A stretch of DNA of 62,580 nt, counting the filler, from Bipalium vagum (taxonomy: Eukaryota): NCBI GenBank assembly GCA_037834085.1. It is 3 parts of 3 records of this genome, joined end to end, with 100 filler letters (N's around TTAATTAATTAA, not from the genome) between each part and the next. Parts side by side here need not be neighbours in the genome. Positions count along the whole stretch, not along the records: positions 46,963 to 62,580 come from JBBMKC010155602.1; 2 more parts are not named here. One strand, written 5' to 3'. The notes beneath the pieces were generated by a model, which was not told the origin of the DNA, made no database searches, and saw only the letters and a list, made by a program, of their open reading frames with translations. A program made the position numbers and the translations under genes. The first letter of the stretch is position 1. Every line of letters begins with the position of its first letter. Below, one piece after another: positions 46,963 through 62,580 of this stretch.

Positions 46963-47560
46963 TTTAATAGAAATAAAAGTTTTAAAAATTGTTTGTTTGC
47001 CTTGTTTGTGATCAGTACACTACCTTAGGAGTCAGATCAGGATAAGTCATACACAACCTCAATCTTTCAAAACTTAACAGTTTTATGAAACACTTCATTA
47101 TTAATTATGTAATCTTGTAATATTTTATTTTTTGTAGCATAATTTTCTTTTACAACTTTTTCAATTTTATTTTTTATTCCAGTTAAAACTTCTTCATCTT
47201 TTTTACATTATTCATTATTTCTTCCATTTTAAAAAAAAAATTTATAAATTTGAAAGAAATTATTCATCCACCATTTTTTCAACATCATTCATTGTTAACG
47301 AATCTTTTGTGATTTCCGGTTTATTTGATTTTTTAAAATTTTCTAAAATATTATATTCAACCCCTATCTGATAATTTTTTGGTTTTTTTAATTTGGATAA
47401 TTTTGTAAATATTGATATTTTTGAAAAATTTGTGAATTTTGTAAAAATTGTAAATTTTAATTTTTTGATATTTTACAACTTCTTAAATGAATTTTTAAAC
47501 CTGTTTCACTTATACAATTTTTGTTACAAATTTACAAGATTTTTATCTTCTTTATGAACT

Positions 47561-47797
47561 TTATTTGATTTTTTTCATTGGAACATCATAAGAATAAAAT
47601 AATTTTATTTGTAAATCTTGTCTAATTCGATTTAAAGTTGAAAAAGAAGTTCCAATTTTCTTAGCAATTTGATCTTCTGTTAAAGTTGGATTAGAAGATT
47701 TTGTTTTTGTAAAATCATCTAAAAATTTTAATTTTGAAAATCTCCGAAAAATATCAGGATTAAAATCTTTAAAGACATTTTGAATTTTTAAAAACAA
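47561..47797 (-). other. Small helix-turn-helix ORF, possibly a Polinton/Maverick-like accessory gene remnant
   Basis: KSSNPTLTEDQIAKKIGTSFSTLNRIRQDL is a clear HTH pattern; the element assignment is only a recollected resemblance. Confidence 0.4.
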
Positions 47798-49793
47798 AAT
47801 TTTTTATTTTTTAAGAAAAAAATTGAAGAAATTTAAAATAGCTTAAAAGAGAAAAGTGATCAATTTTGAACAAATTTGAATGGTGCCTAAACATTTGGTA
47901 TAAAATTTTATATGAAAACCTTTATAATATAAAATGTCTTGGTATAAAATTTTGCATATAAAATTAATGATAATTAACTTATTTTTATACTCAAAAAAAT
48001 TCAGATTTTAATTCAATTTAACATATATTTATTTATTTGAAATTTGTTTAAATAACTTTTATGTATCTGAAAATAATTTGAAAACAAAATGTCTGAAACT
48101 ATATCATTTAGTTCAATGGTCCCAATTTTTATTGGCTAACCGTTTTTGAAACATGATTGACTACCGTTAATTCCAATAACAACTCATTAGATTGGATTAA
48201 AAGTGACATTTCATCAATTAAGGAAAAATTAAATGAGAAAATCAAATTCTTAACAGCGAGGAATAAAGATCGTATGAGAAAATAAAAGAAGACATTGAGA
48301 GTATATCTTTGCTAAGTACAAAAATAGATAAGATAAATGAAAAGATTAACGGAATTATATTTGCTCAAATTTAGAAATTATCATGACATATATGTATAGT
48401 ATTTGCATACTAGGTATTTGTATCTCTATGACTATATAAAAAGACGGCTTTTCCCCAGAAATTTGAGATAAACTATGTGGAAGAATTCAACATTTTTTTA
48501 AAAAAATATTTGCCGAAGACGATTCAGTTTACAGTAATTTTATCTCAACGCTATGATTATGCAAAAGGATTTTACAGCAAGTCCCGTTGAGTTTCGGACT
48601 TTCTAGGCGACCTAAAAAGGGCCTAGTGGACAACCCGGGGACCTGTTGCGCTACGGGTGATACCGATTCATTTACGTTACTTTGTTTCTATTTTCGTTAC
48701 TTAATTTGATTGTATTTTTCTTTATTATTAACATTGTCATTGGACTTGATTTCCTTTCAAATATTGATAGATTTACGGTTTTGATTTGATTTATGAATTG
48801 ATTTTGATTTTTAATTGTTGTGATAGAGTGAATAAAGTTTTATTGTGAGTGTTTTGATTAAGCTTTTAGGGTGCGGATAAAGTATTACAGTGGGAGTTTT
48901 GATTCAGTGAGAAAGCAGTTAAGGTTTTATAATGAGTGGTTTTAATTCCTTTTGGTTTTAAAATCGAAAAAACGAACACAACACATTAAAGTAAAGAGTT
49001 GTTGATACATGAGCGAAGGTTACTTGTTAAGTTTAATAGTAACAAATTTCAGATATATTTCTTAAATACCAGAACAAACGGCAATGATTCACTGTTGCAA
49101 TCGATAATATCTACTATCAAGAAAGTATATTTCTGTTGTTTTTCTTCTCCAAAGGTAAACTACCAATGAATGATGATTAAACGTTCGATTAAGTCAGGCA
49201 TATTGAATACACTTACAAGCAAACACAGGCATAATCTTCATTCTCCGACAAAAATCCAATCAAACAATTCCTCATCAAAATACTCATTATCATTTGATGA
49301 AAAATTATTAAAACTACTGGATATCTTTCTATTCCTTTAAGTTTCCTTCAAATACTAAAGAATTTATTGAATTAAAAGATTAACAATATATTAATATTAT
49401 TAGAGAGGTCAACGAAAAATTCTTTAAAATATCTGATATTGATGAACCTTGTACAATATCAAATAAATTTTAAATATAATGGTTTATTTATAAAAATAAT
49501 AAAGTAAAAAATTTTTAGAAAAAATTAGGACTGTCTATAAAAATAGATTATTTCATGGCGAAAATAAGGTTGAAAAAAGAAATAATAGAGTTGAACATGA
49601 AAGTTGTTCATAAAACATAAAATTTTTAATATTTCGAATTCACTGATAATATTAAGTTGATCAATATTTTTAATCATTTTTTATAGATCGCTTTTGAAAG
49701 AAATAAAATCTCTTAAAATAAATTAATTACGTGTTCCAACATTTATTAAAGATATAACATCTTAGTTCAATATATTTAAATTTCTATGAAACC

Positions 49794-49917
49794 ATGAATA
49801 ATGAAGAAATGAGAATTATAATTTGGAATGAGTTCCTACTTGGAAATACTGTATCAAAAAACTAGGGATATTCGAAAATTACATAAAAATGATGTTGCTT
49901 CAAATATATGGTTCAAT
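49794..49917 (+). mobile_element. Mariner N-terminal fragment
   Basis: MNNEEMRIIIWNEFLLGNT resembles M.K..IR.I.LYEFKLG. Confidence 0.5.
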
Positions 49918-52533
49918 GCCAGCCACACAAATTATAACGCAAAAAATTTCTGAAAAAAGAAAAACACACACAAAGAACAAAGAAATCATAAAAATAATAA
50001 ACTTAACGAGGCGCAATAAATCGCAAAGGTCAAACATAAAACGAAAACGAAGATTTCCAGAAAGCAATAAAACGATATTAAATTTTAAGGACAACATCTT
50101 TTTTATAAGAAGAGAACTTTCATCAAAATCCATAATCAGTTCAGTATCCGGCAATCAACATTATATTCGACAGTAATTACAGCCGCAAATATCATTTAAT
50201 AGACCATCACGAAGAATTCCCGATTACGAGACCCACTATATAAACAATCAAAATCAACAGCAAAAGGAAGAGAGCGAAAAAAGAAAAAAAGACAGAGTCA
50301 ACATCTACGAACAGTTTGGATATTCCCGTCGTGAACAGATCAATTCACAGGAGCAAATTCTTAGACTACGACAAAAAACCCTTCAATTATTCAAGTCTTA
50401 GGAGAACCGAAGTGAAATCAGAAGACGAGCATTTTATGCTTATTTGAAGAAGTAAATCTTTAATATTATTTTTTTTACTTGTAATAACTAACAACAAAGT
50501 CCTAAATAAATTTTGCTCTCATTTGGAATTAGTCTTTAAAAAAGTATTAAATATTTTTGAAAAGTATTGATAAAGTTTTATTATAATCATAATGTATCTT
50601 TGTGTTAATTTAAACGTTGCTATATTCATAATTTAATATATCACTAGCTTATAACCTAAGGATTATAAGACCGATCTTAAGTAATTCTTTTAATTTGCCA
50701 TTTTATTATTAAGCAAGCGTGTCTTGTCAGACAAGACATAGTTTGAGTTAAATAAATAAGTAAATACTCAGACCAGGATCTGAGTATCATCTAACCCTTT
50801 TGCTCCTTTTCTTATACAATTTTATTTTTTTTTGTTCGTATTTCACACCCTAAGTATGGCGGTGAGATATAATTTTATTCTTTACTGAGGACCTCTGAGC
50901 CTAAGCACGAGAGGATTTTTATTAAATAATAATTATAATTAATAAACTTTTCAACGATCAATCAAATTCGATATTACTCATTTTTATTAATCTGTTTACT
51001 TTATTACGTTTGAATAAAAGTATTAACTCTAATATTGTTCTCTCAATTGACTTAATTAATACCGAACACAACCTAAAGCAACCTTCAACCGTTAAGTCCT
51101 AAGAGTTAACTAAGCTCCGACTTTAACAACATTTATCTACCAAACTTAGGATCTAAACAATATAACTGGTAGTCAAAAATATTAAGATAGTGAACTCATG
51201 ATCTGACAAAAAATATAAAGTTTTTTGAATAATTTTCAGTTTACTTGAATAGAAATAATTAATTTATTTCTTGACAGAATAGTGATGTGTGATGAAAAAG
51301 TTATCTCTTAGGCCAATCACAAAATATAATACTGATAGCTTAACAAAAGTGAATTCCCCAATGTGTCGTATAGGGCTCTTCCCTTTCAAAGATATTGTTG
51401 ATATCAGTTTGGTAAAATATTTATATTATTATAAATTTAGATTACTTATATTGTACTTGTCAATACTTGTCAACTAGTGAAACTGTCACTTCGGATACCT
51501 ATTGCGATTATATTGACAAAATGCATCCAAAGCTAAATGTGTAACCAACAAAACTTATTCTGTTGCAAATTAATATCATACAGTAAAATAATAAATATCA
51601 TTTATAATAAAAACTAATCGAAAACTTCTGAAACTGGTCAATGAAGTTACTGCGATGAACAATATTCATCAAGCTTAGTCCAAATAAATTTCTGACGTTA
51701 CTTTTCTTTTTTTACTCTTGAGAAAAGTAAGAAAATTACTATCGAATATTTCTTTAAATAGAAACTCAAGATTTATTAAAATCCTGAATTTATACACTGC
51801 AAAAGATTTGATCAAATTTTGTACAGAAAAGTGAAAAATCACATTACTCAACAGTAATGACATCGAAAAACCAAAAAGCTTTTGAACGAAAATAAGAAAA
51901 ACACTTTCAAAATGAGTGAGAACTTCTACTCACTTAAGAACCTCGAGTTTGTAAGATTCACATATAACCATGACCTTGGAAGTAATCATCAGGTATCTCT
52001 GTTTAATTTTATGAATTTTTCTATTTAAATAAAGATGATTCATCTAATACTAAACACGATAATCCATACTGTGATTTCTCTAGAGGCCATCTATTATTTA
52101 TATTTTATTATTATTATTTCATAAAATCCTGCCACTTATCTAAAAGGAAAACATTTTCCTAAGATAATAAGAAAAACCAAGTTCAACTAAGCATTGAATC
52201 ATTCCGAAATAAAAAATTAAGAATAAAAATTTCGACTTAGGATGTTAAGTGGAAAATAAATTAACTGATAATATTTTTTAATAATTCCAAATGTATGGTT
52301 GGGTTATCAAATTTTTAATAATATTGAATATTTAAAACAATTTTTTTTAAAAAAATTTCATTGGTTCAATGTGAAACAAATATATATTCATGAATCGATG
52401 GATTATATTATTAAACATATTACATAATACAACTCGTTTACAGAACTCCTTTCAATAATTGAAATTATTTCGTAATTAATTTATATTACAATTATTTAAT
52501 ATAAATATTTTATTTAACCAGAACAGTTTTTTT

Positions 52534-54255
52534 ATGAAGAAGATTAATAGTTTCGATTTTTTCCATTTAATTCACGTTGTGAAAGAGCCAAATACCTTCA
52601 AACATTCGGATAATGTTCGAGATCATTTGAAAAGTGTTAGAAACTATTTTGAACAGACAAAATGTCCAGAAGATCTTAAAACACAGTTATTCTTAAAATA
52701 TCTAAGTCTCAGTGTTTTGGAAGACTTAAAATTACAAATGGATTACCATGATAAGGTTGATTTTGAATGGTATGAAGATAAATTACTTGAACTTTATGAT
52801 GACAGAAGGTCAATGGCCATGGTCCTTGTGGAATTGGTAAACATGAAACAGAAATTGCCAGAAACTATACTTGACTTTGCAACCAGGATTAAACAGAAGG
52901 TAGAAAATAGGAAAATACCAATTACTATGCAAGAAAATATTAAAGTACAAATATTTATTAATGGATTGTTCAAAAGAAACTATGCAATGGCTCTTCAAAT
53001 TTTAAATCCAAAAACATTGACTGAAGCTGTCAATATGATAAGGATAGATTTCAATATCAGCGAAAAAAGTAATGAAAACGATGATAATAGTAACCAGAAT
53101 AATGATTATTTGAGTATAATCAAATCTCTAACTGAAATAATAACCAATGAAGTTAAATCTTCTCAAAAAAATCAATCAAAGATTTCTGCAAATGAAGATT
53201 TAACTTTCTGTCCAGTTCCTTCCGAAGATTACAAGGTTCTTCTTTCGGAAATTGTGAAAAAATTTCAAAAATCTGAACCCAAAGGAATCATAATTTTCCC
53301 GAAATATAATGGAAAATTCAGTATTGTGGATATACCAGAAAATGATATAATGGTTGGAATTCCATTCGAAAATCAATCTTATGAAATAATCGGTTGCAAA
53401 AAGAATTGTGGATACATAATTTCTGACAGATTGACGAAAAAGCATGCAGTTTATAAGCTCCCAAGTGAAGAAACAACGGTGATCGGCCCTAGTGGAAATA
53501 TTCGTTTTGTCAAAAAGCCAACATTGATCGGTCCTTCGAAAGTGGATAATAAATTGGAAATTATTTCACTTCCTCAAAATCTTGTGGATGAGAACAAAAA
53601 TCATTTAACTTGTGAAGAAATTATTTCGATTTTAGAAATGCACACTGATAAAGAAATTAATGGAAAGAAAACCAGTCAGCATGACATCTTTGATAACTCA
53701 TTAGTAATAAAACCAAAAACAAGTAACGACTTTATACAGCCAATTAAAGCTGGAAATCAAATAAAATTTCCGATAAAGTCTGATGATACGGATTTAAATT
53801 CCATGACTGATCAGAATGATATTTATCAATCAATCGCAAAAGATGTTCAGAGTTATGAAACTATAGATTTTAATAGTTCTCAATGTTTGCAATTTTCTTT
53901 AGATATTGATCATTTAGAAAAGATCCGAACTCAACAACCTATTTCACTGAAAGAATGTAACAATGACGATGACTATGTAACACAATTAACAAAGGAACTG
54001 TTATTAGATGCAGACACCACAAATCTCGACAATTATAACAACATGTCAAGTGTTAACTCACAGTATTCTATAAGTGAAACCAACGTCTTTCAAACAATAA
54101 ATACAAATTCTATTTACAAAGAAGGCATGAATATTGATTCAAGTACAATAAATGTGGAACAACTAACAAACATGACGAAGAATATCAACGGTGAAAATAT
54201 TGGTTCTGAGAAAGTAGTGGGTCGGTTTAAAATCACTGCCGTCCATCAAAACTAA
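52534..54255 (+). CDS. Intact 573-aa stand-alone Ty3/gypsy Gag-capsid-derived protein with a novel C-terminal extension (candidate domesticated gag)
   Basis: aa about 17-170: EPNTFKHSDNVRDHLKSVRNYF, MHR-like MKQKLPETILDFATRIK, FINGL, PKTLTEAV. No CCHC knuckle, DTG/DSG protease or downstream pol; uninterrupted frame amid decayed TEs. Confidence 0.85.
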   Translation: MKKINSFDFFHLIHVVKEPNTFKHSDNVRDHLKSVRNYFEQTKCPEDLKTQLFLKYLSLSVLEDLKLQMDYHDKVDFEWYEDKLLELYDDRRSMAMVLVELVNMKQKLPETILDFATRIKQKVENRKIPITMQENIKVQIFINGLFKRNYAMALQILNPKTLTEAVNMIRIDFNISEKSNENDDNSNQNNDYLSIIKSLTEIITNEVKSSQKNQSKISANEDLTFCPVPSEDYKVLLSEIVKKFQKSEPKGIIIFPKYNGKFSIVDIPENDIMVGIPFENQSYEIIGCKKNCGYIISDRLTKKHAVYKLPSEETTVIGPSGNIRFVKKPTLIGPSKVDNKLEIISLPQNLVDENKNHLTCEEIISILEMHTDKEINGKKTSQHDIFDNSLVIKPKTSNDFIQPIKAGNQIKFPIKSDDTDLNSMTDQNDIYQSIAKDVQSYETIDFNSSQCLQFSLDIDHLEKIRTQQPISLKECNNDDDYVTQLTKELLLDADTTNLDNYNNMSSVNSQYSISETNVFQTINTNSIYKEGMNIDSSTINVEQLTNMTKNINGENIGSEKVVGRFKITAVHQN

Positions 54256-54341
54256 TTATCCTATGTACATATATATAAACTTTTTCCTTGAGTTATTCGA
54301 TTTTTAAATTTTAGCAAAATAATTGTTAAATTTTTAATGTA

Positions 54342-54347
54342 AATAAA
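54342..54347 (+). promoter_or_regulatory. Candidate polyadenylation signal of the gag-derived gene
   Basis: AATAAA 87 nt after the stop; weak evidence in AT-rich DNA. Confidence 0.35.
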
Positions 54348-57077
54348 ATATAAAGTACCTTAATTTACTTGGTGACTATAATCAATACTTTAAAAATGAA
54401 TTTTATGAAAATTCGCTTTAAATCACAAAATTTAATCTTGATGTAAAATTATCTTAGAATAAGAAATTTTAAAAATATACTTTTTTGTATTAAGGATTTT
54501 TAAAAAAGATAATTTAATTTACTTTTAAAACATAAATCTGAAAATATTAAATGAATCAGTATATTTTCTATTATAATTTAGTAATCAATATTTGAATACT
54601 TTTTTATTCCAACTATTAATTATGTTGAATTTTTCGAAAAAATAAAAAATAATTATATTTTTAGAACATTATTTGTTAATTCTGTTCAAAGCTGAGTTGG
54701 TAAATAAAAACAAATTTATTTTTATTAAGATTTATGAAAGTATATTTTATAATTTTATAGAATTTTTTAATCAAAAGATTATCAATATCAGTAAGTGAGT
54801 TTGAAATAATTATCAATGTTTTTTGAAAAGATCTACAATGTATCAATTTTAACGATCATACCAAATAACTTTTTTTAATCTTAATGTCTTTCAAATTGAT
54901 TTTGTCATCAACTTTAATAATTTTAATTACCAATTGACTATATTTTGTAATTAATTTTAAATTACAAACCACAATAGATAACGAATACTCATACAATTTA
55001 AAACATTCTGAATACCCGTATTTCACATACCTCAAGAAAGTGGTAATTATAAATGTAACTCAATTTTAAAAACATACAATTACATAATTGATTTATCAAA
55101 AATGAATTGTGCTAGTTGTGTAAATCATTTCATTAGTTACTCAATGCATCTTTTATGAATTTATCAATCTAAATTATTTTATTTGTTTATCAAATAGATT
55201 TTGTAATATCTAATTGAATAAGAAAAATGTTATTTCTTTAATTTTAATCAATAATGTACACACAGTTATGTTAATTAATCTTGGTACGATATAAATGGAA
55301 CTCAATTCATTTATATTATTAGTTTTACTCTGAATTCGAATTTATAATGTTCACTAATTTCACTATGAAAGATAATATTTGATTGTTTTTTTGTACATTA
55401 AAAAAATATTAGTAAATTTGAATAATTTTAAATAAGAACATTGTATCACTGAATATTTAACTAGTATTCTTTTCTTTTTATTCGTTCTTATACGTAAATC
55501 CGTAAATATATTCCTGCGATATATATTATATTAAGAAAATAAGGGTAAAATAAAATTAAATAATTCATAACCACAAATATTTAAAAAATAAAATTGCGGA
55601 TTTTAAAGCTGATATGAAACAGAATAAATACCTGATGATCAAAATCCAATTGAGCTATGAACAATATTTGATTTACATTAAATTAAATTTATTGTTATAA
55701 TTTGAGATAGAATTTAATAATGTTTAGGTAATATTTTTATTTTGTTAATTAAAATAATCGAACTTTCATAATCATATAACATTATAAAACCTTATTAGCT
55801 TTGTTTTAGTTGTGCGAAAAACAAATTATCAAAATTTTAAATAACGAGGATTAACTTTTATGATGATTATATTTTAATGAATAATCAAAACAGTGTTTTT
55901 TAATTTTTAAAAATAAATTTCTTATTCCAAAGTATATTTAACTTTTTATAATTTTTTAAAAATATCAATTAAATTAACAACTGTTTTTATTCCCTTTCAT
56001 AATGAATCTACTGATAAATTAAAGTTCATAATTTCTTATTCTTAGTAATTTGAAAAATGTAATTTACTTATTCAAAATTAAGTTTACAAGTGATGTTTAA
56101 GAACTCCGAATATTTTAAAAATTAGTCCTTTACTTTAAAAAATATCTTTCACATTAAGAAATATAGATTTCTTATGTATTTTTTTTAAATATTTAATTTA
56201 AATGATTTTAATTAAATATTAAAAAATAATTTTAAAAATCTATCTAATCTTTTTAAAATCTATCGAAAAACTCAAAGTTCAGTAAATTACTTTTTCAGAT
56301 AATATTTTACCAATTTCAGAGATTGTAAACTCTTGAATATTTTAAAAAGAAATTATTTATGTAAATTTTTAAAAATCTAGATTATATTACTATAAAATTC
56401 AGATCCATTTAAATAAATTTCAAGAGTTTTTAATTATTCTCTCATAGAACTAGAGTAAAATAAATAAAAATTGAAAATTAAAGTTAAATTATTAAATAGG
56501 TCGAGAATCAAAAATAAAGGAATAAAGCTAAAGATCATTTTCGAGTACAAGGACCTTTAAGAAATAAATGTAATTTTTGTTTAAAAACCAATAGAAAAGG
56601 ATTGATAAAAAAATAGTCAATCAAGTAAATTTTTACCAACCGCTAGAACTCTAAATTACCCATAGACTTTAGTATACTTGGATCCCTAAATAATAAATAA
56701 TTACTCGAAGTAACCTTTACTCTTTAGTAATCGAGAATCATTTATATTTCCTTAGGCTTACTATATTAGTCAAACTCAAAATTCTTTATATTACAAGGTG
56801 GAGAAAAGTCTTTACTAAGGACTTCTTTAGACTTAATTAAGTCGAGAAGATTCTCATTCTTCTAAGGAAAGTATACTAAAATAATACGAGTTTAGAACTT
56901 AAAAATTAAAGTTCTAAAAATTAATTTATTGCAATTATTCTTCATTATTTTTAACATTTATAACAAATAATTGACTTTTCTCTATAAATTCATAAATACA
57001 ACGGTATTTATTTAAAACGAAAAACAATTTACTTATTAAAAGATGTTGGATTGGCCAAAGGTACAAAACCCGATGGT

Positions 57078-57079
<2 letters not shown>

Positions 57080-57143
<64 letters not shown>
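57080..57143. repeat. (AAT)n microsatellite
   Basis: Perfect run; explains the poly-Tyr tail of ORF 57079..57306. Confidence 0.95.
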
Positions 57144-57189
57144 CGGGAGAATAATAAAAATAATAATTTGGGGAGAATTTGTAATCACA

Positions 57190-58260
57190 ATTGTTATTTA
57201 TTTTCATTGAAGTCTTGACGTCGGGACTTCGATGTATTAGAATAAAAACAATTCGAATCGAGAAGTTCAGGCCAGAAACGTGGGCAAATCGCCAAAACAG
57301 TCGCAAACATCACAACAACCAAGTGCCTAAACGCCTTTTCATCAAACGTCTCAGCCCCATCCAGACAAGTTATTCAAGACCCTGTAACAAAAAACCTAAA
57401 GATACATTAGGGCCAATATTTACCTAATAGTAGTGAAAAAGCCATGTTGCACATCGTTCAATACCAAAAAAACCCCTATAAAGAGTGTGTAAAGTTAATC
57501 AATAACCATGAAGTATTAAATTGAACCAAGCAAATGAAGAATTAGTAAATCCAACAAAAACTCTTCCTTTTACCCTACCTCTACTCGAACCAAAAAGTCG
57601 CGGTCACCAGATAATCAAATCCATATTTGAAAGCGGAAAAGCCGTAACGTTAACAATGGCCAATAGGTATAGTGCCACTAAAGCATCCGATCAATCAGAT
57701 TCGGAATATGAAGATTGCATCCTAACCATAGAGGATCCTATGGATACCTCTCTAGATATGCCCATAGTAACAACTAAGTCAGAAGCACAGGACACAGAAG
57801 TACTAAGCACCACAAATAAAGACTCTGATACTAGTAATAATACCGTATCGTCATTGACAAATAGAAAAAGGTTAAACCTTCCTATAAAAAAAATAAACGA
57901 CCAAAAGAAAAGCAAACAAGCAATAAATAAAGCCCCATAATACAGACAACACAATTAAACCTGTTCACTGACGTTGACGTACCTATATCGACCATCGCAG
58001 GTCGACCAATAAAATACCAAACGCAAGCAATTCATAACTTTCAAATACCTACGCAATTAATATCACAAAATGGTCAAATAATAACTATAAAAGGATTTGT
58101 GGCGGAGACAACAAGGCGAAAAAATTTTAATTCAATTACCAATCAATCAATCTACTTTTGAGGACAAAAGTTCTCAAAATGAGGGAGAAATGTGGAGACT
58201 TCCAGGCACAGACTTCCAAACACAGAACCAGACCAAGACCTCAATAAATAAACAAAACAA
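57190..58260 (+). mobile_element. Possible 5' fragment of a non-LTR retrotransposon (broken A/C-rich ORF)
   Basis: Strand-biased, interrupted ORFs 57191..57427 and 57521..57940 with an acidic S/T/D-rich low-complexity tract; no diagnostic motif seen. Confidence 0.3.
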
Positions 58261-58599
58261 AAACAACTAATGACATTTGCCTTTTGGTTAACTTAGTTAT
58301 TGATACAACGTGATTTAAACTTAGTGAATAAATCTCTCATCTGAACGTTACACACTATAAACCCTTCTGACTAAATTTCGAGCTTCGTTAAGTTTTGAAA
58401 GAGTAATAACTTAAAGCCTCATTTCGAATACTTAACAACATCATAAAATTAAAGATTGAGTCACATCAAAAGATTATGATTCATGTGTACGACTTATGAT
58501 TTATGAAGTTCCCATTGATTTATACAGAAACCAACCAAATTTCAATTCAAGTAGAAGAGTATGAAATGGCCAAGATCAAGAATATGGTGATTTTCCGGC

Positions 58600-61110
58600 T
58601 TCAGAGTTCCTGATCCAAATCTTTGAATATTTTCTGCTGCCCGATGATTGGGCTATGCCCCAGAGGACCTGGGAAGGGAAATTTTTGAAAATTTCCGAAG
58701 GTACCAAAATTTTACACATGTGGGTTTTAGCCCTTGGGGAAGGCGTTTTACCACATGTTGAATGCGGTAAAATTGTAATTTATACCCCCATTTTGCCGCT
58801 ACTGCGCTCAGAGAGGAACCACTCTTGGACGTTTCCTGCTGCTCGGCGGCTTCCAACCGGCCTGTCGTCTTCAATCAACATCGCTGAGATCCTGTGGCAC
58901 GGCCTAATGAATGCTCCGAAAATCCCCAATGCACCTGATTCCCTGTGGACCCCTCTTAGAGTCGGAGGAGGTGACTTTTTCACAAATTTCACTAAATTTT
59001 TAACTGATAAACTGAACTTTAAATTTTTATTTATGTATTTTTGTATGTTAGACATTTGTGTATATCCGTATGATGTGCTTCCTTCTCTTGAACTAGGCCC
59101 TTCTGGCCAAAATCCCCAATTTTATCGGTATTATACTTTATATGAGGCTCACCACCCTAATTCAGCCTATCCTTTTTACTATACCACTTACATCACCCAA
59201 TTCTTGGCTACTGACTCCTTTCTACCATCCCAACATCCTTCTGCAATGTCACCTTCCAACTCTCTGTCCTTTTCCTGTATTAAATATCAATTTATTAAGG
59301 TTTTTTACACCTTTAAAAATCTGCCATTTATGGGGAGCCTCAATATGAATTATTATATATGTTATAATTTTGTTTATCTCAAATCCCACCAAAATTTTTA
59401 CATTTATAAAATTTTTTAAATTTCTGATTCTTATGGTGAAAAAATTATTAAGATCCGTGGCCGGGATCAAAAGCTATGAGGCTTTTAATTTCGAAATATT
59501 TATTAATTATAATTTAAATAACTCTAAGATTGTACTTAGAGTTATTTCTTATTGTTATTTTTATTATCCATCGATCTGTTATATAAAGTATTTCTGTCCT
59601 TCCATCTTGGATAATCCTTTGGCTCTTCCTATTGTCGTCCCCTGGCCATCCTCTACTTCCGGTTCTGCCCTCTTCCAACATTGTCCTGCTAAAAATTGGC
59701 CTTTTCCTCAGGACCTTCCTGCCCCAATGGCTCCTACTCCAGCCGAACTGTGACCATCAAGCGTGGTCTTGATAAATCTATTGAGGAAAAATCTAGCGAA
59801 TTTATACCCATCTGGTTCCCACAATCATTGGCTTCTCCTCCACCCTCTACTACTCTGCCTTCCAAGCCGGCCATTTCGTTAACTTCCAAACCTGCTGATC
59901 CTCTTCCAGATCCTCCTACGAAACATGTCTCCTTTAAGGATGCCGTTTTTTCTGGACCAAAAATGTGCAATCTCCCTAAGACACTGCAACCCTCGGAACC
60001 GCGGAAAACACCTCAACCGAAGGGTCTGCCCTCGGCAGCAGAGAAAATTTAGCTCCCGAAGTCTGATACATTACAACCGTTGAAAGATCAGGCGAGAATT
60101 CTTCCTACTGAGGATCTCTTGTCAAAGTTTGCCCTCAGCCCTCCCAAGCGGTGGGTGAAACGGCCTCTCATCTCAATATTGACTCTGATCCGCCTTCTCC
60201 CCTGGTGGACTATCCTGATAATGTGGCTTTACCACCTGCACCTGCTTCTTTTGATGTGGAATGCCAGGTGGACCTGACATACATGGACCAATCAGTACAG
60301 ACTGAACGGCATACTGTTGATGTTTCTGTCCAAGCTGAGTTGCCGGCCCTTCCGCGACCATCTCAAATTAACACTCCAAGACGCTTTGGCCCTCGTGGTC
60401 GCCTCTACTGTAACCCCTTTGATTACGGTCAAGCATCTCCTCCCCTCTTCTCTGGACAGCCGCCGACTCCTTTTGAAGTAACATTCTCTCCACTGGTTGG
60501 ACCCCTTCCTTCGTCTTCTGTAGATGTTCCCCTAAGACCCTGCTCCATTAGTCTCTCCGGATCTGTTCCCCGCTGCCCTGATGAGGTTTCATCACCTGCT
60601 CCACTCTCTCGATGTGTCGCCATCACCTCGATCCCCAGCTCGCTTGAGGTTCTGGAGGTGGATGAAGAAGACCTAAATTCGGATTCTCTCTCCCTGGACC
60701 AGACTGTCGACCTTGGCGCCATCAATTTTTCCGGTCATTGCGGTTGCTCTCTCCATGGATGAGCTGAAATGTGCCCATTGTCGAAAGACATATGGAATTA
60801 AATACGGGAAGAGCATGAACCTGGACAAGCATCTGCACCAAGTCCATCAGATTGAGTCGAACGGCACAGATTTATAAATGCATCTGTGGGCTGATCCTCA
60901 ATTGAGAGGCTTTTTTCCCTCACATCGCCTCCCATAAACGGGCACCTTCCTCGACCCCGAGCCAATCAATGGATGACATCCCAGTGACAGAGGAAGACCG
61001 TACCTCCAGTTGACTTGGAGGGCATGCAATTGAGGCCTATATAAGGGCCAACATCTCGGACCCTTTAGTTATCTTTGTTAGGCCCGAGGCCTGCGATTGC
61101 CCTCATACAG
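58600..61110 (+). mobile_element. 5' part of a NeSL-clade non-LTR retrotransposon: structured leader, Pro-rich region, C2H2 zinc finger, start of a Ulp1/C48-like protease
   Basis: GC-richer island; Pro/Ser-rich frames 59696-60762; CAHC-x15-HLHQVH finger at 60770-60847; DIPVTEEDRTSS*LGGHAIEAYIR (60969-61050) resembles the Ulp1/SENP I.IT..D...WL....I..Y motif; truncated before RT. Confidence 0.72.
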
Positions 61111-62478
61111 AGGAATTGAAAAAAGAAAAAATTGAATAAAAATTAAATAGAATAAAATATAAATAAATAATATCATAAATTAAAACAAAAAAAATACAAA
61201 AATACAGTAAAAAATAATATAGTAAGTATAACTTACTAAAAATAGATTTTATATAAAAAAATTAAATAACAAAAAATATAAATGGGAACCTATAGGTATT
61301 AAAGAAAATATTTAATTTATTATTAGTAAATTATTACTGCTAAAAATAAAATTTATTATTTTATATAAAAACGATCAACATTTCTGTTGAATCGTACTTA
61401 AAAAAAAATAGATCAAACTTAGAAAACAAAACGTACCTAGAAAGCATTTGCATAAACGTCAGACAATGAAATTCCTACATAAATAGCGAAAAATTATTCG
61501 ACCACAAAGATAGCTGAACATTTCTATAAAAGCACAGTATCACATATTCCGTCAATATTTCAAGCTTACAAGTAATTTATTTGTTATAATTATATTATTA
61601 TTTCTTTTTAATATTAAACTTTAATTTTGTAATAAATTAAATTTAATTTTTTAATAAATTACACAACTGTTTTAATTAATTGCCTTGAAAATAAATGTTA
61701 GGGTCTAACCCTAAAATCAAATAACTCTTTATTTTTTCCTCATTTCTGTCGCAGATTTTTTATTTTTGTAGTTCACACACTAATTAGTGCGGTGAATTAC
61801 ATATCTTTGAGACACTGATATTTTTATCAGTGCGAAAAGATTTCCTTCCTTTAATTAATCCTAAACTCTGGCAAAGTTTTCTTACAGAGGATTGTTCAAA
61901 CAGCAATCACTCTTGCTTTGTAAAGTCACTCAACCAATTGTTATTTAATATTAATAGTTTATAAAATATTATGTTATTTTAGTCGATCAAAAATCATAGT
62001 CAGATCACGCTTAAATCAACCTTCTAACCGTTAAGCTCTTAGTTTAGACTTAACAACAACATCCCACATATTACTCTATTAATGGAAAGTCTTATTTTAA
62101 ACCAATCGAGAAATCAGAAATTTGAAAATCAGGAATTTACTCGGCGCTTGGTTTTTACATTCAATTCGCACTTAACTTCGCTTTGACAAGTAAGGTAAAA
62201 TTTGCTATTTTAAAGGTAATCGACCTTTCCGTTTTTGTTTTCTTTACTAACCGATTTTGATTCGCTTTAGGCAACAGAATACGTATTTTTGACAACAGGA
62301 CTTCTTCGGTTATCATAAAACCAAGAATACTTTAATTAATTAATATTATTGTGATAAGAGAGATTTATTTTTGTTTTATGAAATATATTTTTCTAAAACA
62401 AATAACGTTATTTATACTACCTTTGAAGGAGTAGGTGAACCAAAATCTACCATATTTATTTATAGTTAGCAGTTAATA

Positions 62479-62580
62479 CAGGGTGCGCCAAAAGTTACTT
62501 CCCACCTAAAAATGATCATAACTTTTTGTAATTTAAATAATTTTCAAATTTTATTTTTTAGATAAATTATATGAACAATG
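62479..62580. mobile_element. Terminus of a Tc1/mariner-superfamily element cut by the window end
   Basis: TA|CAGGGTGCGCCAAAAG start, similar to the CAGGGTG terminus at 39124. Confidence 0.6.

Follow-up and report, generated by a model that had tools for sequence, protein, structure and literature searches.

Does the one long open reading frame (ORF) in a stretch of Bipalium vagum DNA represent a host gene made from a retrotransposon capsid, or is it the surviving part of a mobile element? The window that we analysed is 62,580 nucleotides (nt) in length and joins, with filler between them, three parts of three records of the genome assembly GCA_037834085.1. The ORF lies in the part spanning positions 46963–62580, a 15.6-kb piece of JBBMKC010155602.1, and the initial annotation of the window had proposed that it is a domesticated capsid (Gag) gene of Ty3/gypsy origin. 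Our analysis supports this proposal, and we conclude that the gene is probably an independent host domestication of a Ty3/gypsy gag. The capsid fold is predicted with confidence, the ratio of nonsynonymous to synonymous distances (dN/dS) does not approach 1, and nothing points to a young gag-only element.

A long intact ORF in AT-rich DNA

The ORF at 52534..54255 on the plus strand is complete and intronless, with an ATG start, 573 codons and a TAA stop. The ATG, which has a stop in the same frame 19 codons 5′ of it, is aligned with the first residue of the relative P0001, described below. In DNA as extremely AT-rich as this, stop codons are frequent. They number 29–71 in each of the other five frames of the ORF stretch, and when the piece was shuffled block-wise 300 times, the longest ATG-initiated ORF averaged 98 amino acids (aa) and never exceeded 187 aa. 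The ORF is therefore present as first described and is far longer than shuffling can produce; at its own base composition, the probability of 573 open codons is ~8e-23. It is also the longest ORF in the piece, the runner-up, of 254 aa, falling within a GC-richer block.

The GC content is 30.5% within the ORF and 18–30% around it, and the 3 kb downstream, at 18–20% GC, are devoid of ORFs. The surrounding DNA has a repeat-rich look and no recognisable genes: none of the flanking ORFs reaches the cut-off score of any Pfam family, and scans of the piece with Rfam and for tRNAs and tandem repeats gave nothing relevant. The encoded protein, searched whole and in parts, matches no Pfam family at E ≤ 10, and a single-sequence search of the PDB sequences likewise returned no match at E ≤ 10. 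The absence of a Pfam match is the sole point in favour of a chance ORF or a dead pseudogene. We regard that explanation as refuted, and give it virtually no credence, in view of the length statistics, the confident fold and the existence of a conserved relative at saturated synonymous sites.

The N-terminal domain is a Gag capsid

Residues ~10–178, encoded by 52561..53067 (+), are judged from homology and predicted fold to be a genuine Ty3/gypsy Gag capsid (CA) domain. An exhaustive phmmer search of 1.84 billion representative proteins identified 158 relatives at E ≤ 1e-3, the best matches, at E 2e-16, being to Gag-protease proteins. Among the 150 of these matches that were listed, all but one close relative align only inside query residues ~7–234. 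When ten of the best matches were scanned, the region beyond the aligned part proved in every case to hold a retropepsin-type aspartyl protease and one or two zinc knuckles of the CCHC type, and in both of the elements that were looked up the next gene encodes RVT_1, RNaseH and rve, which is the Ty3/gypsy domain order. Conversely, tblastn with the Gag-protease proteins of the relatives gave matches at 52597–53052, with an E-value of 8e-21 for the segment 52606–53052.

An alignment of 42 sequences, comprising the Bipalium protein, P0001 and 40 retrotransposon Gag matches, has conserved columns at P-x-x-F, Q106, E134, F141, G144 and P159, with Q106 invariant. All four of the capsid motifs cited in the initial annotation could be located: P19-N-T-F22 (residues 19–22), a major-homology-region-like motif (106–118), F141-I-N-G144-L (141–145) and P159-K-T-L-T-E-A-V (159–166). 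The second of these, Q106-x3-E110-x3-D114-F115-x2-R118, lies at the start of the C-lobe (52849..52887, +) and is an exact regular-expression match to the Q-x3-E-x7-R major-homology-region pattern, which recurs at residue 106 of P0001 and at residue 117 of P0002, a retrotransposon Gag. The Bipalium protein itself falls below the gathering thresholds of the Pfam families Retrotrans_gag (PF03732) and Ty3_capsid (PF19259). Fifteen of the 42 aligned sequences match Retrotrans_gag (E ≤ 0.1, best 3e-5), three match PNMA and three Ty3_capsid; since the PF03732 matches occur only in the aligned relatives, the link of the Bipalium protein to this family is transitive. A profile compared with the PDB sequences found the C-terminal domain (CTD) of human immunodeficiency virus (HIV) p24, dArc2 and PNMA2 at E-values of 0.25–1.5, which are not significant, and its top matches were coiled-coil artefacts of the linker that follows the capsid.

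The fold is predicted with confidence. With the 42-sequence alignment, AlphaFold2 (AF2) models residues 10–170 with predicted local distance difference test (pLDDT) scores of 91–97 as two helical lobes, with N-lobe helices spanning residues 28–89 and C-lobe helices spanning residues 94–176. The best Foldseek matches in the PDB are mostly capsid proteins. The PNMA2 capsid (8rb3, 8uyo) is matched with an E-value of 1.6e-3 and a probability of 1.00 over ~175 aligned columns at 13–14% identity, and the CA-CTD of Rous sarcoma virus (RSV) with a target-normalised template-modelling (TM) score of 0.76 and a root-mean-square deviation of 2.1 Å. Also matched are the capsids of Copia, rat Arc, dArc1, HIV, murine leukaemia virus, bovine leukaemia virus and human endogenous retrovirus K, together with the capsid-like C-lobes of PEG10 (7lga) and MOAP1. 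Among the predicted viral structures of BFVD, a probability of 1.00 is reached only by retroviral Gag proteins and a metavirus ORF1. The modest Foldseek E-values arise because the query model included ~400 poorly modelled residues. The initial annotation had made a capsid fold one of its tests, and both the AF2 scores and the PNMA2 and RSV matches speak for it.

The other retroelement parts are absent

All of the other retroelement parts that we searched for are absent from the 15.6-kb piece. The protein contains neither a C-x2-C-x4-H-x4-C nor a D-[TS]-G pattern, and its Pfam scan gave no protease, reverse transcriptase (RT) or integrase match. A tblastn search of the piece in six frames, with two Pol and two Gag-protease proteins taken from the nearest elements, gave matches confined to the capsid part, with no trace of nucleocapsid, protease or pol; for pol this covers the DNA from 5.5 kb upstream to 8.3 kb downstream of the ORF, where the piece ends. 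Nor did the piece yield a long terminal repeat (LTR) pair, there being no direct or inverted repeat of at least 40 nt. The repeats of at least 20 nt are only AT-rich chance matches of 24–40 nt and 72–88% identity. No second copy of the gene is present in the piece. The regular-expression, Pfam, tblastn and repeat searches accordingly agree with the initial annotation, in which no CCHC nucleocapsid, protease, RT or integrase and no clear LTR pair had been seen.

A relative with the same layout reveals purifying selection

The one relative that aligns beyond the capsid, P0001, is a protein of 566 aa encoded on a 1775-nt Logan contig (L001) from run SRR33002330. Its first residue is the methionine that aligns with that of the Bipalium protein, L001 also has an upstream stop in the same frame, and the two proteins are 61% identical over residues 1–400. 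The layout is the same: zinc knuckles and protease are lacking, the same middle domain is present, and the tail is of similar length. L001 ends 12 nt past the P0001 stop codon.

Synonymous sites are saturated between the two genes, the proportion of synonymous differences (pS) being 0.8–0.98. Identity at codon positions 1, 2 and 3 is 0.71, 0.82 and 0.38, respectively, compared with 0.27 expected by chance at the third position. In contrast, dN is 0.14 in the capsid and 0.31 in residues 235–400, rising to more than 1 in the tail. Even if dS were only 1, the ratio dN/dS would be ~0.14 for the capsid and ~0.31 for residues 235–400, so that the value near 1 which the initial annotation had named as a sign against domestication is not observed. 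Low dN combined with saturated dS shows that strong purifying selection acts on residues 1–400. In the tree of capsid domains, the Bipalium protein and P0001 are sisters with a support of 100, on a stem of length 1.19 with tips of only 0.08 and 0.19. A layout common to two species whose synonymous sites are saturated indicates that this derived arrangement is old and has been kept by selection.

The exact Bipalium protein is not present in a collection of ~15 billion proteins, and the P0001 cluster there has one member, from one contig. Word-index searches seeded with either protein gave no third member, and none emerged from scans with back-translated patterns, whether of metagenome contigs or of viral contigs, the latter scanned with patterns of the whole-protein alignment only. 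The singleton status of both proteins in these collections gives no sign of a multi-copy family nor, with neither LTR pair nor pol in the piece, of the young gag-only element against which the initial annotation had cautioned. Of the criteria for gag co-option in PMC8321522, selection is apparent from the distances given above. On synteny or congruence with the host tree, and on the orthologue sought by the initial annotation, the evidence consists of one relative with the same start, layout and losses, on a 1775-nt contig that has no flanks from which synteny could be read.

The C-terminal half contains a second conserved domain

The capsid is followed by a poorly conserved linker, residues 179–244 (53068..53265, +), for which the proportion of nonsynonymous differences (pN) is 0.49 and the AF2 pLDDT 42–74. 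It includes an acidic, N-rich gap as well as two predicted helices, 192–215 and 231–244, and it takes the position at which the retrotransposon relatives have their zinc knuckles (residues 239–279 for the CCHC knuckles of P0002).

Residues 245–400 (53266..53733, +) form a conserved domain, ~57% identical to P0001, with a dN of 0.31 at saturated dS. Some ten short β-strands are predicted between residues 251 and 345, followed by a helix at 360–377, at low confidence (pLDDT 44–68). Apart from P0001, this domain has no relative in Pfam, the PDB sequences or the protein library. When it was modelled alone, the pLDDT was 44, and the Foldseek matches of that model, all with probabilities below 0.1, were treated as meaningless. 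The domain was also considered as a decayed zinc-knuckle and protease region and rejected as such, hhalign giving a probability of 1% and a sole local match of 22 columns that is wrongly spaced from the expected site of D-T-G; a frame-shifted remnant of the same parts was ruled out by six-frame tblastn.

The remaining residues, 401–573 (53734..54252, +), make up a tail that is rich in N, S, T, D and Q and predicted to be disordered (pLDDT 29–56). It is not reliably alignable between the two species, with a pN of 0.60 against a pS of 0.76. The frame is nevertheless open in both, and the probability that 173 codons of this composition remain open is 2e-7. The ~400 aa of unrelated sequence that had been noted after the capsid must thus be divided: residues ~235–400 are a conserved domain, and only 401–573 are unconstrained in sequence.

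Host gene or mobile element?

The closest relatives of the Bipalium protein are all retrotransposon Gag proteins, and the gene might itself still be mobile, in which case it would be either the sole gene of a gag-only LTR retroelement that is not autonomous or the one gene still intact in a copy that is decaying. The ORF would then be intact because the element, and not the host, depends on it. Gag in active lineages likewise has a low dN/dS, the surrounding DNA is repeat-rich in look and without recognisable genes, and our count of copies covers only the 15.6-kb piece of the genome. We nonetheless consider a mobile gene unlikely. There is no LTR pair above the level of AT-rich chance matches and no trace of pol or protease in the 5.5 kb upstream and 8.3 kb downstream, and the occurrence of the derived layout in a second species at saturated dS would require a gag-only lineage of very long life. 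Moreover, both proteins are singletons, in their own samples and among the ~15 billion proteins, where a multi-copy family would normally leave variants, and the tree of capsid domains joins short tips to a long stem. Giant retroelements do exist, the initial annotation had allowed for one, and the piece is short, so that the ORF could belong to a retroelement or virus-like element that is unconventional or much larger and has its remaining genes outside the piece. This we hold to be highly improbable, since pol in the relatives starts 63–72 nt after gag-protease and here the 3 kb downstream hold neither an ORF nor any similarity to pol; L001, ending so soon after the stop, gives no hint of a following gene.

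A host gene could also act as a dominant-negative Gag in the manner of Fv1 or enJS56A1, blocking related retroelements by binding to their capsids, whether incoming or nascent, or by co-assembling with them, and forming no particles of its own. The predicted capsid fold and its major-homology-region motif are intact, everything needed for replication has been lost, the bulky C-terminal addition would be expected to disturb a regular shell (as we infer from PMC6525542), and the tail evolves fast, as might fit a gene in conflict. Against this, contact would be made through the capsid, and no part of the protein evolves more slowly (dN 0.14); it bears no mark of an arms race. Even the nearest retrotransposon Gag sampled has only ~30% identity, which makes co-assembly with a present-day element doubtful, and the piece contains no related element. 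Overall, a restriction role of this kind seems unlikely to us.

Several considerations weigh against a domesticated gene. Its single known relative lies on a 1775-nt contig that lacks syntenic flanks, copies could be counted only inside one 15.6-kb piece, and a low dN/dS alone is no proof of host function, as active retrotransposon lineages also keep gag under purifying selection. The gene is known from DNA sequence alone and not from transcripts. The protein has no Pfam match, and its profile-to-PDB comparison gives no significant similarity to Arc, PNMA or HIV CA; any self-assembly is predicted solely from the fold, and the middle domain is not modelled with confidence (pLDDT 44).

A possible mode of action

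If, as we think probable, the gene is a domesticated gag, the Ty3/gypsy capsid domain would have been kept near-intact, with its two helical lobes and major-homology-region motif, and the nucleocapsid knuckles, protease, pol and LTRs of the ancestral element would have been lost. A β-rich domain and a long disordered tail would have come to be placed after the capsid. This layout would predate the split of the two species, which are now saturated at synonymous sites, with selection having kept the capsid and the β-rich domain since. From the constraint on both lobes and on the major-homology-region motif, we infer that the protein may act through capsid-type self-association, as dimers, as pentamers or hexamers, or as a lattice or shell involving both CA lobes, in which the C-terminal β-rich domain and disordered tail would serve as a new effector or cargo part.

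The geometry of the Ty3 shell bears on what such an assembly might contain. That shell has T=9 symmetry and 540 chains, the N-lobes forming the outer layer and the C-lobes the inner layer around an interior of ~5e4 nm3 (PMC6525542). As the C-lobe is innermost, the 393 residues that follow CA would face the lumen. By our own arithmetic they amount to ~43 kDa, or ~52 nm3 per chain, which for 540 chains exceeds half of the ~5e4 nm3 of a Ty3-like interior. This filling of the lumen, together with the lack of a zinc knuckle, would make an RNA-filled, Arc-like capsid less likely than a shell filled with protein, a scaffold or open lattice, or a Gag that serves as a decoy and interferes with related retroelements. 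A more specific proposal is that this is an invertebrate-type protein, not described before, in which the retrotransposon shell now surrounds or displays a conserved new domain in place of nucleic acid, so giving rise, independently of Arc, PNMA and PEG10, to a protein-loaded, virus-like compartment or carrier; we think this improbable.

Comparison with other gag-derived genes and with the nearest retrotransposons

Like tetrapod Arc and Drosophila dArc1 and dArc2, which are co-opted Ty3/gypsy gag genes, the Bipalium gene appears to be a host gene in which a two-lobed capsid is all that is left of the element, with neither pol nor LTRs, and its model is matched by the capsid domains of rat Arc and dArc1 in Foldseek. 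The sequence similarity is, however, not significant (E 0.34 for the profile against dArc2), and the protein groups with a different Gag-protease lineage. It also has ~390 extra C-terminal residues, including a conserved β-rich domain that is absent from Arc. Capsid formation and RNA transfer have been shown for Arc; the Bipalium protein is known from its sequence and predicted fold.

PNMA2, a mammalian co-opted gag and the best structural match, resembles it in having a Gag capsid fused to a non-Gag part and in having no zinc knuckle. The identity is only 13–14% and the profile E-value 0.86. The Bipalium gene would be an independent event in a different, very AT-rich genome, and its extra part comes after the capsid, whereas in PNMA proteins the extra domain is located before it. 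The PEG10/RTL genes, which are sushi-ichi-derived, likewise stem from a Ty3/gypsy gag(-protease), and the PEG10 C-lobe 7lga is among the Foldseek matches, but PEG10 retains the zinc knuckle and protease, neither of which is present here. Among invertebrates, Drosophila Gagr and beetle Crtg1 are comparable as single-copy Ty3/gypsy gag genes under selection (PMC7231272, PMC8321522). Crtg1 has been reported as a derivative of an Mdg3-like element; the source lineage of the Bipalium gene has a protease in its first ORF. To judge from sequence and modelled structure, then, the gene is an analogue of the co-opted gag genes rather than a member of the Arc/dArc, PNMA or PEG10/RTL families, the resemblance being one of fold only.

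The closest kin of the capsid in sequence are the Gag proteins P0002 (contigs L002–L005) and P0005 (L006), with 28–31% identity over ~150 residues. They have the P-x-x-F, major-homology-region, F-x-N-G-L and P-x-x-L-x-E-A motifs in common with it. Beyond the capsid they include a D-T-G protease and a pair of CCHC knuckles, followed by an RT-RNaseH-integrase gene, all of which are absent from the Bipalium gene. The P0002-type elements, consisting of Gag-protease and Pol, were found in four independent samples (L002, L003, L004 and L005). Three of these contigs have exact terminal overlaps, of 141, 120 and 99 nt, and therefore close on themselves. The unit is ~5.1 kb in length, and in it gag starts only 138 nt after the stop of pol, so that an LTR could be at most ~138 nt long unless the forms are tandem or circular. 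Another relative, P0004, of 820 aa from an ENA metagenome, is predicted to be a fusion of a protein-kinase fragment, ubiquitin and a Gag-zinc-knuckle-protease; it is probably a gene call running through a retroelement inserted beside host genes.

In a survey of 2,011 eukaryote proteomes, only 14 deep gag co-option events were recognised, seven of them in animals, and only two of these seven, dArc and beetle Crtg1, in invertebrates (PMC8321522). The Bipalium gene would add a further independent case, and one with an unusual layout, in which the capsid is near-untouched, the nucleic-acid-binding knuckle is missing and a new conserved domain occupies what would be the inward-facing position of a Ty3-type shell. 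It may be seen as a natural experiment in the use of a capsid from which RNA packaging has been removed, whether as a scaffold, as a shell of protein or as a decoy for retroelements. If the gene product assembles, it would offer a compact starting point for the engineering of particles that carry proteins. Pfam contains no model of the family, of which P0001 is the one further member among the public collections searched.

Other features of the piece

The GC-richer block mentioned above spans 57200–61120, with a GC content of 35–51% amid DNA of 18–28%. On its plus strand are broken proline-rich ORFs at 57521–57940, 58655–59419, 59696–60052 and 60151–60762, none of which scores at the cut-off of any Pfam family. 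A short Cys/His-rich stretch comes after 60764, and an A-rich run at ~61114–61180 ends the block, which looks like a decayed insertion of another element. Directly upstream, at 57080–57167, is a (TAA)n microsatellite of ~29 units.

The last 120 nt of the piece, 62461–62580, open with a sequence, CAGGGTGCGCCAAAAGTTACTTCC..., that is reminiscent of mariner-type terminal inverted repeats; the piece ends after this stretch, before any transposase can be read. Towards the other end, on the minus strand at 47561–47797, a 78-aa ORF has weak helix-turn-helix (HTH) matches, below threshold, to HTH_24, HTH_3 and the Tc3 transposase HTH (E 0.05–0.2), and from these it may be part of a DNA-transposon gene.

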